In this document: positions 27,566-32,000 of the stretch, piece after piece | How the letters are laid out: each line of letters begins with the position of its first letter | Numbering within the stretch: position 1 is the stretch's first letter | NCBI RefSeq assembly: GCF_000400465.1 | Contig: NW_008806281.1 | Location: 450,637 to 482,636, forward strand | From: Wallemia ichthyophaga EXF-994 | Taxonomy: Eukaryota > Fungi > Basidiomycota | Length of the DNA: 32,000 bases | Direction of reading: 5' to 3' | Made by a program: the position numbers and the translations under genes | Notes under the pieces: model-generated | The model's input: the letters and a program-made list of their open reading frames with translations, nothing else | Told to the model about the DNA's origin: nothing | The model's database searches: none

Positions 27566-28246
27566 ATGCTTAAATTACGAAAATTTAAATCTTTAAAGAA
27601 ATCTTTCAATTATATAAAGCAGATTGATAAATCAAATAAACATTTCTTATTGGTTGAGTTGCTCAGGCTCGCTAGGATTTCCGGGCAGCTCAACCTGCTT
27701 CATGATATAAGCACGGAGTACTTGAGCAATTACAGCCACTCAAACGCGTACTATCACGCTCTCCACGGCTACAGGCCACGGCAATCACCAATCAGCCTTT
27801 TCAATATGAAATTCAACCGCCTCCTGCAGGAATCCAAGTTGCGAGGCAATGATCATATCAACTACAGTCTGTCTCTCCTCAATACGCATTCAGAATACGA
27901 TAGGGTGACGCTTAATATATTCATTAAACACACACTTCGCTGGTCGTTGCCTTCTCGCTCGCTTTGGGAGCTCTACTACCTCGTTATGGTCCGGGAAGGC
28001 CACAGAAACGCAACATTACCGCCTGGGATACACATGCAATTTAATACACGCCACCACACCAATAAATCCAAGCTAGAATACCTCCTCCACTCATCCTCCA
28101 AGCATCCACTCAACTACACAAGGCATACGCACATATTATACAAGTATTTCATACGATCGTTCAAGTTTAATAAGGATACTGTCGGCTATAATCATTTGCT
28201 GGCTTGTTCATCGACGGCCTTGAAGTCTATGCATACGGGGACGTGA
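27566..28246 (+). CDS. Hypothetical basic helical protein, possibly mitochondrial and PPR-like, 226 aa
   Basis: Intact 681-nt ORF filling the gap between two conserved genes. Lys-rich N-terminus without acidic residues; YDRVTLNIFIK and LYKYFIRSF resemble degenerate PPR helices (inference). Confidence 0.55.
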   Translation: MLKLRKFKSLKKSFNYIKQIDKSNKHFLLVELLRLARISGQLNLLHDISTEYLSNYSHSNAYYHALHGYRPRQSPISLFNMKFNRLLQESKLRGNDHINYSLSLLNTHSEYDRVTLNIFIKHTLRWSLPSRSLWELYYLVMVREGHRNATLPPGIHMQFNTRHHTNKSKLEYLLHSSSKHPLNYTRHTHILYKYFIRSFKFNKDTVGYNHLLACSSTALKSMHTGT

Positions 28247-29247
28247 TCCGACGCGCCATACACCTCCATCCTGATCACCACATCCTCCACACGCCCCATC
28301 AAACCTCTCGAGACCACACAACTGTCGATACGCCAGCCAATACCTTTAGACCTAGCATCGAATCTATATCCAAAATATGTATATTGCCCGACGTTATCGG
28401 GGTGCTTATAGAATCAATTTCAGCATGTGCATTATCTTATAAGAAACATTACTCACCAGCTCCTTCCACGCATCGACAAACTTATCTGAAAGCTGCTCTT
28501 TGTAGCCATTCACCTCAGTCTCTGTCCACCCTGCCGATTTATTCCAATTACTCTCGTCATTGCGGATATCTTTGCTATCGTGGCAGACGTTCAAATCTCC
28601 GAGCCACACCACGCTCTTCTTTTCATTTAGATCGTGAAGATACGTTTTAAACGCAGAGTTCCAAGCTACCTTATCGTCCATCGCCTTCAATCCCTGTCCT
28701 GCATTGGGGACATAAGTGCCTATCACAAACTTATCCTCGAACTCGAGTGTAATGATACGTCCACGAGTGCTGTCCTGATTTGGATGCGTTGGGAGAATTG
28801 TCTCCACATTGCGCGCTTCCTCACCATTCCACAAAACCGCAATCCCCGCGTATCCCTTCTTCGTACTGCCTGTCCAAACCGAATGCTTGTAATTACTCTT
28901 GAGAATTTCGTCGTTCGGTTCTTTGTCAATTTTGGTCTCTGTCAATACGAGTAGATCTGCAGGCTCAGCGTTGATATATCTGTGCATTCCCTGCGCGTCC
29001 CTATGAGCAAACGGCACGCATAGCAGATATTCTTACCTACCTTCTTTACTGACGCGTTGTATCCCGCTATATTCCAGCACGTCATACGCGTCACGCCTTC
29101 GCCTTTCTCATACGCTCCCAACTCTTCCGGCAGCTGCTTATTTACTGGCTGCGTAGGGTCTAGTGGCTTCACTGGCTCTTTCGCCTTACTTTTCTTCGTT
29201 TCTGGTGCTTTCTTATCGTCGCCGTCCGCCTTACGCTTGGGTGGCAT
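28192..29247 (-). CDS. Exonuclease III / APEX1-type AP endonuclease, about 317 aa
   Basis: MPPKRK NLS-like start; CWNIAG, LTETK, YAG.AV, TYVPNAG, WLGDLNVCH, YTYFGYRF.AR.K..GWRID, GASDHVP. Introns 29040-28991 (50 nt) and 28456-28405 (52 nt); stop TGA 28194-2. No Apn2-type C-terminal zinc finger. Confidence 0.92.
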
Positions 29248-29743
29248 TCGGATTGTCAGTCGTTGGAGTTGAAAAGGAAACACGCGTGGGACGTGACAAT
29301 GTAAATGGCGTACAACTCGTCCAATGGCCACACTTATCTTGATCATCACTCTCACTGCCCGCCAACTGACTTGCGCTCTCCACGCCAAGAATATTTCATC
29401 TATTCAAACTCTTTTTGCCCACCTACTAAATTGCTAACCCATGCGATTTCGGCGTCAAGGGCTTGAAGAGTGCTAAGTTTTCGATAAGACGGCATACGAG
29501 GACTCTCTTTGTGGAATCAAAGCGTTTGATGCTGTCCATGCATAATGCAGTCCGAGCGTTTTAGCCGATTACATATTAACGATATAATTTGGTGATATGA
29601 ATTGGTGCTTGAAATGGCTTAGTCGTTGAATCGCTCGGAGTAATCACTGGCAACTTATAAACGCAATGACAATTGGTGATATTAACCTAAAGTCACATAA
29701 AACTTTCATGGCACCGGAGAAATTTCCATGAATCACCTCACTA

Positions 29744-30085
29744 TTTCAAACACTCATGGTAGATTTGAAATTCACAAACGCTATCGGTCAAATAGAAGCA
29801 GCCAATGTCACCCCGTGTGGTGATTGCTGTGTCAAGTACGAGACTGACGATGGTCCTGGAAACCTGGACAACGGAACATACACCGGACCATTAGGAGATC
29901 AGCCGTGTTCGGATGATGCTCCCGAATACGCGAAGATACGCGACGGAATCTTGCTCACTACTGGAAATTGTAATGGAACATTCGTCGCAGACTGTGGCTA
30001 GTATGTTAACTTTCACAGGCTTTCCTATACTAAAGTTTATCAGCATCAGAACAGTTCGAAACTACCTCGGACCAACTTCCTCTGC
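29744..30085 (+). repeat. Direct repeat copy 1 (342 bp, identical to 31185-31526)
   Basis: By-eye comparison shows no mismatch over 342 nt at offset 1441; about 20 nt of partial similarity continues on the right. Confidence 0.92.
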
Positions 30086-30152
30086 CACACGCAAAATACC
30101 CAAAGCCTTATCATTGCTCGTCGTGATGACAATCTCCTTGTCATTGATATAA
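29756..30152 (+). CDS. Small Cys-rich protein (81 aa unspliced to 30001; 117 aa with hydrophobic C-tail if intron 30001-30043 is spliced); may be a gene fragment
   Basis: Six Cys and three N-x-T sequons. The stop TAG overlaps a GTATGT donor; acceptor TATCAG at 30043 restores the frame to YIRTVRNYLGPTSSATRKIPKALSLLVVMTISLSLI*. Confidence 0.45.
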
Positions 30153-31156
30153 AAATGTCGCGATAAATTGTAAGCATCAATTCTAAGTGTCTATATGTAC
30201 CTTCTGATTGCCTTACCCATGATAACCGTCTCGGCTAGCTAGTTTGTTCAAAAGACTGCAAATATACTTACTTTTTTGGGTGTCTTAAATAATTATATTA
30301 TCATACTACAATGTAAGGTGCAAACTCGCTCATTGTGTAGTAGCTTTACGTCAAAATGCCACATCACTCTTTTTGGTAATAGAACTCAGATCTACAAATA
30401 AAGAGGACTAGATATTATGATTGATCATTTCTTCACATTCAGGAAGATCTAGGCATGCGTCTTCACACCTTAACGGCTTTTCAGATAAGCTTGCTAAGTT
30501 GGTCAATTCCCAATTTGCCATTTAGGCAAGTCCTTGCAACTAATACAAAGTAATGGGTGAAAGCATTAACATCAGAACTGTAAGTGTATTTATCCTCATT
30601 AGTCGATTCTTTGATAATGGAGCGTAACACTAAGTTCAATTAAATATTTTGTGCACGTACGATAAAAAAATCTACATCCAGACAAAAAAATAAATTGATT
30701 TTTTTCGGAAATCTTCAAATCAGACATTTTGTCACTCGTGAAAGTGGGTGTTGAGATGGTTGTTTGTATACTGATAGCTTATATTAAGGATTCCATTGGA
30801 CAATTGCCGTCGATCAATAATGCGAAGAAAAACTGTGCCACTTAAAAACTCGATATCTGATATGCATTTAATTAAAAAATTTTAGTTTGCTAGTTGTAAT
30901 AAAAGCTTGTACCTGAACGGTTAAGCCACTTTATTAAATTTTAAAACTGATGATGAATGCTAAAAGATAGCTTTTAAGAGCAACTCGATATACACAGTAA
31001 CTTTGGTAAGCTTTATGATAGAGTGAGACTCTTGGTTGTTTTGATAAGTGACTCCTGGTTGGTTTGCTAAGTGAGTTCAGCGGAGCAAACAGGGGCACTG
31101 TCAGTAATCAAAAGACTCCGCTTTGAAAGATTTCATCGGATAATGCATCGATAGCC

Positions 31157-31163
31157 TATAAAT
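31157..31163 (+). promoter_or_regulatory. Candidate TATA box upstream of repeat copy 2
   Basis: TATAAAT 34 nt before ATG 31197, outside the duplicated segment. Confidence 0.3.
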
Positions 31164-31184
31164 TAGGAATATCTAAGGCATTTC

Positions 31185-31526
31185 TTTCAAACACTCATGG
31201 TAGATTTGAAATTCACAAACGCTATCGGTCAAATAGAAGCAGCCAATGTCACCCCGTGTGGTGATTGCTGTGTCAAGTACGAGACTGACGATGGTCCTGG
31301 AAACCTGGACAACGGAACATACACCGGACCATTAGGAGATCAGCCGTGTTCGGATGATGCTCCCGAATACGCGAAGATACGCGACGGAATCTTGCTCACT
31401 ACTGGAAATTGTAATGGAACATTCGTCGCAGACTGTGGCTAGTATGTTAACTTTCACAGGCTTTCCTATACTAAAGTTTATCAGCATCAGAACAGTTCGA
31501 AACTACCTCGGACCAACTTCCTCTGC
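31185..31526 (+). repeat. Direct repeat copy 2 (342 bp)
   Basis: Identical to 29744-30085. Confidence 0.92.
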
Positions 31527-32000
31527 AACACGTAAAACACCGAAACTTTTCCTTCTACTAGCTCTTGGATTCCTTACAAGCTCAGTTGCAGCATTTGATG
31601 TTCTCGGCATAGTATCTGGCATACTAGGAATCGTTAGCTTTGCGCAACAAAGCGCTCCAGACCCCCTCCCACAACCAGCAATGAAAGTACGCTTGGGTCT
31701 TAACGGTGTGAATGGTGGTTTGAAAAATGCAGGAGGTGGTTTACCAATGGCGAAAGCGTTTGACTACAATGGTCGACAAATCGCTCAAAACTTCCATCAG
31801 ACATGGCCAGGCTTGAACAGAGGCTCAGGAGAAATTTTTGACATTGAGTTTGACGAATCCCCGCAACTTCAAGTTCAGAATTGGGAGCTCCACGCTCAAA
31901 CTGATGGTATATGTATAGCATATATTTCTTATCAAGATTCCAATGGCAGGGACGGCGCTTGGTTAGGAGATGTTGGAAGACTGTTAAGGTTTGGGCTTGT
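31197..32000 (+). CDS. Cys-rich module fused (via intron 31442-31484) to a secreted-type uncharacterised protein; runs off the window end and is absent from the ORF track
   Basis: The frame from ATG 31444 stays open to 32000: ...TPKLFLLLALGFLTSSVAA-FDVLGIVSGILGIVSFAQQ...VRLGLNG..GGLKNAGGGLP...DGICIAYISY....GAWLGDVGR. A signal-peptide-like segment is followed by a globular domain. Confidence 0.7.

Follow-up and report, generated by a model that had tools for sequence, protein, structure and literature searches.

A perfect direct repeat at a chromosome end of Wallemia ichthyophaga: probable partial duplication and gene conversion rather than the recent birth of a fusion gene

Subtelomeric partial duplicates that exchange sequence by interlocus gene conversion are the closest described counterparts of the locus reported here. 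Other related systems are the read-through or "Rosetta stone" fusions and duplication chimeras, the yeast Y'/X-type chromosome ends that undergo terminal deletion and telomere healing, and, at the level of protein structure, the PLAT/LH2 domains. The locus lies in a window of 32,000 nucleotides (nt) of the salt-loving basidiomycete Wallemia ichthyophaga EXF-994, which constitutes the last 32 kb of scaffold KE007231.1; its final 13,809 nt match the end of that scaffold exactly, and base 32000 of the window is the scaffold end. Near this end are two copies of a gene start encoding a cysteine-rich (Cys-rich) module. Copy 1 forms a small gene and copy 2 heads a long gene. A sequence-only reading of the window had proposed that a recent event placed the module onto a secreted-protein gene, building a new chimeric gene. 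The perfect repeat is real, yet it is no marker of the birth of a new fusion gene. The two copies are probably partial duplicates in a subtelomere that have been homogenised by gene conversion.

The identical direct repeat consists of positions 29744-30085 (copy 1) and 31185-31526 (copy 2), both on the + strand. It is 342 nt long, gapless, with an offset of 1441, and starts 12 nt upstream of an ATG (29756 in copy 1, 31197 in copy 2), as had been reported. It contains the 12-nt leader, exon 1 (245 nt, an 82-codon Cys-rich sequence), a 43-nt intron of the form GTATGT...CAG and the first 42 nt of exon 2. An exact match of 342 nt within 32 kb cannot be of chance origin. As proposed, the duplication occurred at the DNA level, since the intron is included in both copies. 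Beyond the exact run there are 19 nt more of homology with 4 mismatches (30086, 30092, 30097 and 30101), which bears out the earlier observation that identity decays over about 20 nt at the copy-2 junction. In this diverged end of the paralogous segment (30086-30104 in copy 1, partner 31527-31545 in copy 2, + strand), 3 of the 4 differences, a small sample, are at third codon positions and synonymous. Homology then ends sharply between 30104 and 30105, between codons 102 and 103, and the copies are unrelated thereafter. This is the true duplication breakpoint, and the duplicated tract is 361 nt long (29744-30104). Outside the tract the flanks of the two copies in the reference are unrelated on both sides.

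A repeat search and inspection of the flanks found no terminal inverted repeats, direct repeats or target-site duplication at the unit ends, in agreement with the earlier reading. Transposon capture of the Pack-MULE or Helitron type is not supported on this ground. A processed retrocopy is not supported either, because both copies keep the intron and the 30104/30105 boundary has neither poly(A) nor a target-site duplication. Two 21-nt inverted matches, I2 and I3 (27770-27790 versus the repeat), are 81% matches and were taken as chance.

The presence of two copies is secure; their perfect identity is that of a short-read assembly, made with SOAPdenovo at K=21 from Illumina reads. Comparison was possible with 21 strain genomes, assembled with IDBA-Hybrid (reference-guided, maximum k = 120) and named here by their contig accession prefix. 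Six of these assemblies (SPOM, SPNZ, SPNX, SPOQ, SPOD and SPOF) read through copy 1 into its own right flank. The right flank of copy 2 is present in contig L001 (assembly SPOL, strain E3P84 plus a sibling), which contains the remainder of exon 1, followed by the intron, exon 2 and the entire downstream domain. With both right flanks backed outside the reference, an assembly artefact with one real copy is ruled out.

The small gene (29756-30152, + strand) has exon 1 at 29756-30000, the intron at 30001-30043 and exon 2 at 30044-30152. It encodes 117 amino acids and is annotated at copy 1 in the reference and in at least six strain assemblies; protein P0186 matches it at 99%. The protein consists of a Cys-rich N-domain with 6 Cys, the motif TRKIPK and a 15-residue hydrophobic tail, ALSLLVVMTISLSLI, followed directly by the stop. 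This single hydrophobic segment thus stands at the extreme C-terminus after basic residues. The tail is predicted to be helical, and a hydropathy profile of the copy-2 protein showed no hydrophobic N-terminal segment in the shared module. The 117-residue protein is apparently tail-anchored. Pfam gave no match for the Cys-rich module, and an AlphaFold model of it from a 2-sequence alignment (pLDDT 35) was uninformative.

The 5' part of the long gene occupies 31197-31981 (+ strand), with exon 1 at 31197-31441, the intron at 31442-31484 and exon 2 from 31485. The reference annotation has a partial gene beginning at the Cys-rich ATG, 31197. The encoded protein has the same 102 residues as copy 1 except for one I/T difference. 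These are followed by a hydrophobic segment LFLLLALGFLTSSVAA (31546-31593, + strand), a glycine-zipper hydrophobic stretch FDVLGIVSGILGIVSF (31594-31641, + strand) and a larger domain. As had been pointed out, no Met is present in the hydrophobic stretch KLFLLLALGFLTSSVAA, which is in frame with the Cys-rich open reading frame (ORF) across the 43-nt intron. The long gene of EXF-994 breaks off after codon 247, because a subtelomeric element begins at 31982, exactly where the reference and the L001 gene part ways. In L001 the gene is intact, encodes 422 amino acids and has one intron. Upstream, the sequence TATAAAT at 31157-31163 (+ strand), read by eye, lies 21 nt before copy 2 in sequence unique to that copy and is a possible core promoter candidate.

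In the sister species W. mellicola the small protein has an orthologue that stands alone, P0187, with 119 amino acids and 74% identity. An intron of 45 nt interrupts its gene at the codon position and in the phase of the 43-nt intron of W. ichthyophaga. Between the species the non-synonymous divergence (dN) is 0.16 with synonymous sites saturated (proportion of differences, pS, 0.74); the Cys-rich module is therefore a real coding module. Within W. ichthyophaga, all four single-nucleotide polymorphisms (SNPs) in exon 1 are at third positions, as are 3 of the 4 edge differences (7/8, P = 0.003). The Cys-rich frame with its 43-nt intron is supported by these third-position SNPs, the W. mellicola intron and the dN pattern.

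A 54-nt intron, as in the NCBI model E3P84_04182, was considered and rejected. It requires an out-of-frame ATG; in the Cys-rich frame it brings a stop in copy 2 ahead of the hydrophobic segment; and neither the SNPs at third positions nor the W. mellicola intron agree with it. The model spans L001:107-1201, and its N-terminus is wrong because the contig begins inside the repeat. The reference model of 227 amino acids (31197-31966) ends at a frame-shifted TAG just ahead of the subtelomeric element. Both public models are probably wrong at one end, and the gene structures given above correct them.

The sequence-only reading had interpreted the Met-less hydrophobic segment as the signal peptide, and thus the original start, of a secreted-protein gene. 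The W. mellicola orthologue does not bear this out. Its C-terminus reads ...TRQVPK-LFAILAFGLAATVCL and then the stop, the same design as the copy-1 tail. In the 27 nt that follow the breakpoint, 20/27 positions are identical between W. mellicola and copy 2. The corresponding values are 9/27 for W. mellicola versus copy 1, which is background, and 7/27 for copy 1 versus copy 2. Since the W. mellicola tail matches copy 2 and not copy 1, LFLLLALGFLTSSVAA belongs to the Cys-rich gene. Judged by this match, the supposed signal peptide is the ancestral C-terminal hydrophobic tail of the Cys-rich protein, and the lost CACC-ATG that had been postulated for it is unnecessary. Copy 2 would then retain the ancestral layout, the tail of copy 1 would be new, and the proposed direction, in which the Cys-rich module replaced the start of another gene, is reversed: copy 1 appears to be the derived, partial copy.

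The opposite direction, in which copy 1 is the ancestral stand-alone gene with a diverged tail and copy 2 was duplicated from it, is improbable. Copy 1 does resemble the W. mellicola gene in size and layout (117 versus 119 amino acids) and is found in far more strains than copy 2. The tail comparison speaks against it, as does the finding of no module copy beside the AP-endonuclease gene of W. mellicola, the counterpart of the gene next to copy 1. The wider spread of copy 1 is explained by terminal deletions, which remove the distal copy 2 first.

Evidence for exchange between the copies comes from the strain haplotypes. L001 differs from reference copy 2 at 29872, 29965, 30008, 30038 and 30086 (copy-1 numbering). 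Assemblies SPOK and SPOL are the only two with contigs broken inside the repeat and also the only two with the long gene annotated. Their copy-1 contig ends at 29883, which is the SNP at 29764 + 119, and their copy-2 contig starts at 29867, which is the SNP at 29986 - 119. Because these contig ends fall k-1 bases from SNPs, the SPOK/SPOL lineage has two non-identical copies, identical across 29765-29985 and different at both ends (29764 and 29986). T at 29872 is found in copy 1 of SPOK and copy 2 of SPOL and in no other strain. A derived SNP shared by both copies of one lineage indicates conversion. Second, copy 2 of SPOL is a mosaic, with 29965 C and 30038 C shared with copy 1 of different strain groups. 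Mosaic haplotypes combined with a shared derived SNP are what repeated exchange between old paralogues leaves behind. The sequence-only reading had named gene conversion between older paralogues only as its alternative; that alternative is now the favoured explanation.

How the copies became identical in the reference itself is a separate matter: the identity may reflect a further conversion event or may be a collapsed K=21 consensus. The latter would mean that the old paralogues of EXF-994 differ by a few SNPs and that one consensus was written twice during de Bruijn assembly or gap filling. This has a substantial minority chance of being right. The reference was built by SOAPdenovo at K=21 from short reads, copy 2 lies at most 820 nt from the scaffold end, and the one further lineage that has both copies shows differences between them at 29764 and 29986. 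The window offers nothing against it, as the end of the identical run at a real difference, 30086, fits conversion or a collapsed bubble equally.

A very recent duplication that put the start of a stand-alone Cys-rich gene onto a secreted-protein gene, replacing its ATG and giving a new fusion, is barely credible on the evidence now available. In its favour are the 342-nt perfect identity with the intron included, the lack of a Met in the hydrophobic stretch and the absence of the N-terminal module from canonical members of the downstream family. Against it, the hydrophobic stretch is homologous to the W. mellicola tail and to nothing in the domain family. The fused layout is present in another lineage with 4-5 SNPs different inside the repeat: L001 has the intact fused ORF, and its repeat haplotype is not that of the reference. 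Old, mostly synonymous divergence marks the edge of the repeat. Finally, relics of the downstream domain lie behind the small gene of W. mellicola. The claim of recency thus falls. The claim of a chimeric gene survives in part; measured against its wider family, in which 120 of 135 homologues have fewer than 15 residues before the glycine-zipper segment, the long gene is chimeric, but it was not built by the 342-bp repeat.

The W. mellicola relics are two collinear, same-strand remnants of the downstream domain about 0.9 kb behind the small gene. The first, PDFLSFNERLLC, was found with the W. ichthyophaga protein by tblastn (17/43 alignment, E = 2e-5 in a 3.7-kb search space), and the second is NFWW. 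Since the relics are in this position, the adjacency of module and domain predates the species split; the fusion, or at least the adjacency, would thus be older than the divergence of W. ichthyophaga and W. mellicola. At L016:11290-11465 (W. mellicola SPRH01000008), behind the small gene, an unannotated, frame-shifted domain relic is seen within a 3.5-kb stretch that has no called gene. The non-coding flanks had no detectable homology to W. mellicola. A synteny break is located by the AP-endonuclease gene (29247-29755 versus L003:9031-10000). The upstream neighbours of this gene in W. mellicola are a HAD hydrolase and a transketolase; in W. ichthyophaga the arm ends with the duplicated genes.

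The downstream domain belongs to a widespread fungal family. Relatives recovered by an exhaustive HMMER search form 507 clusters. Only E3P84_04182, of W. ichthyophaga itself, is closely related to the long ORF, and the next are ascomycete proteins at about 35% identity (Lecanora, Pyricularia MGG_03309 and Physcia). This basidiomycete member thus has its nearest relatives in the ascomycetes, and several of those form lichens. When the fused 253-residue query was used in a word-index protein search, only P0001 was returned; relatives of the small protein surfaced when the small protein was searched alone. Ahead of the glycine zipper, 120 of the 135 homologues have fewer than 15 residues (median 9), versus about 122 in the W. 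ichthyophaga protein. The family N-terminus begins 16 codons past the junction in copy 2, at the glycine-zipper stretch where canonical members start. Because the family starts near the glycine zipper, the extra N-terminus of the long gene is specific to its lineage. In Wallemia, a lineage-specific, presumably cytosolic, module would thus have been gained by a fungal family that comprises about 500 clusters and is uncharacterised.

Family members (P0017-P0165, homologues of the window from 31594 onward) have a glycine-zipper anchor at the N-terminus, a beta-sandwich, and a C-terminal half that is Cys-rich and bears the motif H-S-A-x-x-L-C-x-S-x-x-S-x-G-P-D-F. Pfam gave no match for the family, and a literature search found no paper mentioning MGG_03309. 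AlphaFold modelled the downstream domain (pLDDT 74.5) with a beta-sandwich in its N-terminal part. About 110 residues of this were aligned by Foldseek with PLAT at a probability of 0.96-0.99, a weak match with a best E of 2.5e-3 and a TM-score of about 0.2. The N-terminal half is possibly a PLAT-like beta-sandwich, and this is only a lead.

Together, these observations suggest the following history. Copy 2 would head the older gene, composed of a Wallemia-specific Cys-rich N-domain, the TRK-x-PK motif and the former C-terminal membrane tail, from which the ORF would run into the widespread domain family at its normal glycine-zipper start. Copy 1 would have arisen by partial duplication at the DNA level, when 361 nt from the start of the long gene were copied to a site 510 nt upstream of the AP-endonuclease gene. 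There it would read into 15 new hydrophobic codons and a stop, regenerating a small protein of 117 amino acids. The duplication would be older than the divergence of the sampled strains, and interlocus gene conversion would since have passed sequence between the copies. Up to 19 nt from the breakpoint the whole tract would now be identical in EXF-994, through conversion or through the assembler. Erosion of the arm would have truncated and re-capped strains at different points and deleted copy 2 in most. The repeat, the gene models, the orthologue, the tail homology, the strain breakpoints and the two copies of a second lineage are direct observations; the direction of the duplication, conversion as the homogeniser, the membrane topology and any function are parts of this history that we infer.

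Several points weigh against this history. For the direction of the duplication, the evidence is a tail homology of 27-48 nt in compositionally biased sequence that codes for hydrophobic residues, and neither copy is syntenic with the W. mellicola gene, so that the parent copy cannot be identified from its position. The W. mellicola relics are weak, and a hidden Markov model of the family run on the W. mellicola region was not significant (E = 0.27). Moreover, W. mellicola fits a common ancestor in which module and domain were fused as well as one in which they were merely adjacent. As for conversion, SPOK and SPOL count as one lineage, on shared contigs and proteins (both of each), and differences between the reference and SPOL copy 2 are not significantly enriched inside the repeat (4/219 inside versus 2/455 outside, P = 0.09). 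The junction of spacer and copy 2, between 31184 and 31185, is present in the reference assembly only. Finally, splicing at 43 nt is deduced from the frame, the SNP pattern and the conserved W. mellicola intron, and such an intron is unusually short compared with the species mean of 61-68 nt.

A further elaboration can be entertained, though it is rather doubtful. In Wallemia, a Cys-rich, tail-anchored orphan protein that faces the cytosol might have been fused to an extracellular, possibly PLAT-like domain family. Subtelomeric partial duplication in W. ichthyophaga might then have split off a stand-alone, tail-anchored copy again, with a new hydrophobic tail drawn from non-coding DNA. Both genes would be functional, conversion would hold their shared module alike, and the whole would amount to a natural cycle of fusion and fission within one species, in a genome that is otherwise extremely compact and repeat-poor. 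The long gene is dispensable, because it is absent or truncated in most strains.

The locus is a subtelomeric, eroding chromosome arm. Every other assembly diverges from the reference ahead of copy 2. The first diverged base is 29489 in three SRA-derived assemblies, in which copy 1 itself is missing at this site, 30305 in SPOF, 30367 in SPOM, 30496 in SPOD and 30611 in SPNX and SPOQ. Together with the departure of the reference at 31982, six arm breakpoints across strains fall within 2.5 kb (L002 and L009-L015). Public strain genomes thus already supply a graded deletion series for the arm. Four of the breakpoints (30305, 30367, 30496 and 30611) lie inside the segment 30105-31184, which consists of the copy-1 tail and an AT-rich spacer (GC about 0.35). 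The spacer contains no convincing ORF and is not repeated elsewhere in the window.

One of the truncated ends, contig L009 (SPNX01000025, 1-120), passes directly from its breakpoint into a tandem array of at least 17 TTAGG units, which reaches the contig end and has its G-rich strand facing outward. This array is 1.4 kb beyond the AP-endonuclease gene; inside the window no TTAGG telomere-type motif was found. The usual fungal telomere repeat is TTAGGG. Judged by the array, Wallemia telomeres would instead be built of the 5-nt unit TTAGG; no paper stating this was found in the literature. Other truncated strains have short GGTTA seeds followed by shared subtelomeric elements, TGTTAAGGTTTGGGCTTGT... 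and GGTGAACAAGCATTTAATTATTGTCGATACAATTACC.... The first 19 nt of the former form the end of the reference (31982-32000, + strand), and the same element caps this arm at other points in other strains. The GGTGAACAAGCATTTAATTATTGTCGATACAATTACC... element occurs three times in the last 500 nt of L002. A Pfam search recognised no ORF in the subtelomeric element.

These ends also bear on whether copy 2 belongs to this arm at all. It is decidedly unlikely, though conceivable, that copy 2 and the long gene come from another chromosome end and were joined here by a scaffolding error through the repeat or the AT-rich spacer. No other assembly bridges the spacer and copy 2, the strain contigs leave the reference between 29489 and 30611, and shared subtelomeric elements mislead assemblers. 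On the other side, there is no N anywhere in the 32-kb window. SPNX, SPOQ and SPOD track the spacer for 130-245 nt past the SPOM breakpoint, showing that at least 30105-30610 truly follows copy 1, and the graded truncations fit a single arm with a distal copy 2.

The neighbouring genes of the window are fungal and encode Rrn6, Cdc73, a myotubularin, a DNA ligase, the Mgm1 dynamin and an AP-endonuclease-like protein (Exo_endo_phos). Transcription of the AP-endonuclease-like gene (28192-29246, - strand) diverges from that of copy 1, and no conserved gene follows it towards the chromosome end. A 226-residue ORF at 27566-28246 (+ strand) lies between a BAR-domain gene and the AP-endonuclease gene, whose 3' end it overlaps. 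It has no Pfam match and is called in ENA and Logan contigs and not in the NCBI annotations. The ENA contigs L006 and L007, whose AP-endonuclease gene has 83% identity, do not extend to the region. In L001, a 51-nt copy (80%) of the AP-endonuclease gene start and leader is found at L001:1312-1358 (versus window 29231-29281). It lies about 110 nt past the stop of the long gene and directly abuts the subtelomeric element. There are hints here of an older, larger segmental duplication of the arm.

The locus can now be compared with the known systems. Like the PLAT/LH2 domains, found for example at the N-terminus of lipoxygenases and the C-terminus of pancreatic lipase, the downstream domain has a predicted N-terminal beta-sandwich. 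Unlike them, it gives an E of only about 3e-3, a TM-score of about 0.2 and no Pfam sequence match, and its Cys-rich C-terminal half is without a match. As in read-through or "Rosetta stone" fusions, in which neighbouring genes lose the stop, spacer and start between them, and in duplication chimeras, a complete small protein with its membrane tail is joined to a domain family. The difference is that the repeat here appears to have made the reverse, a short stand-alone copy split from a fused gene. With yeast Y'/X-type terminal deletion and telomere healing the arm shares its six breakpoints, a TTAGG end, and GGTTA seeds followed by a shared element; unlike the yeast regions, the Wallemia element has no Pfam-recognisable ORF, and TTAGG is its putative telomere repeat.

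Interlocus gene conversion of subtelomeric partial duplicates, a concerted evolution of young paralogues that typifies subtelomeres, provides the nearest parallel. It differs in that only two copies and a 361-nt tract are involved here, and in that conversion is deduced and, in the reference, is indistinguishable from assembly collapse. The likeness lies in two direct tracts 1.4 kb apart whose identity ends in older divergence, in a derived SNP present in both copies of a lineage, and in mosaic haplotypes. One 2.5-kb chromosome end thus combines partial duplication, concerted evolution and terminal erosion with re-capping, all of them ordinary processes.

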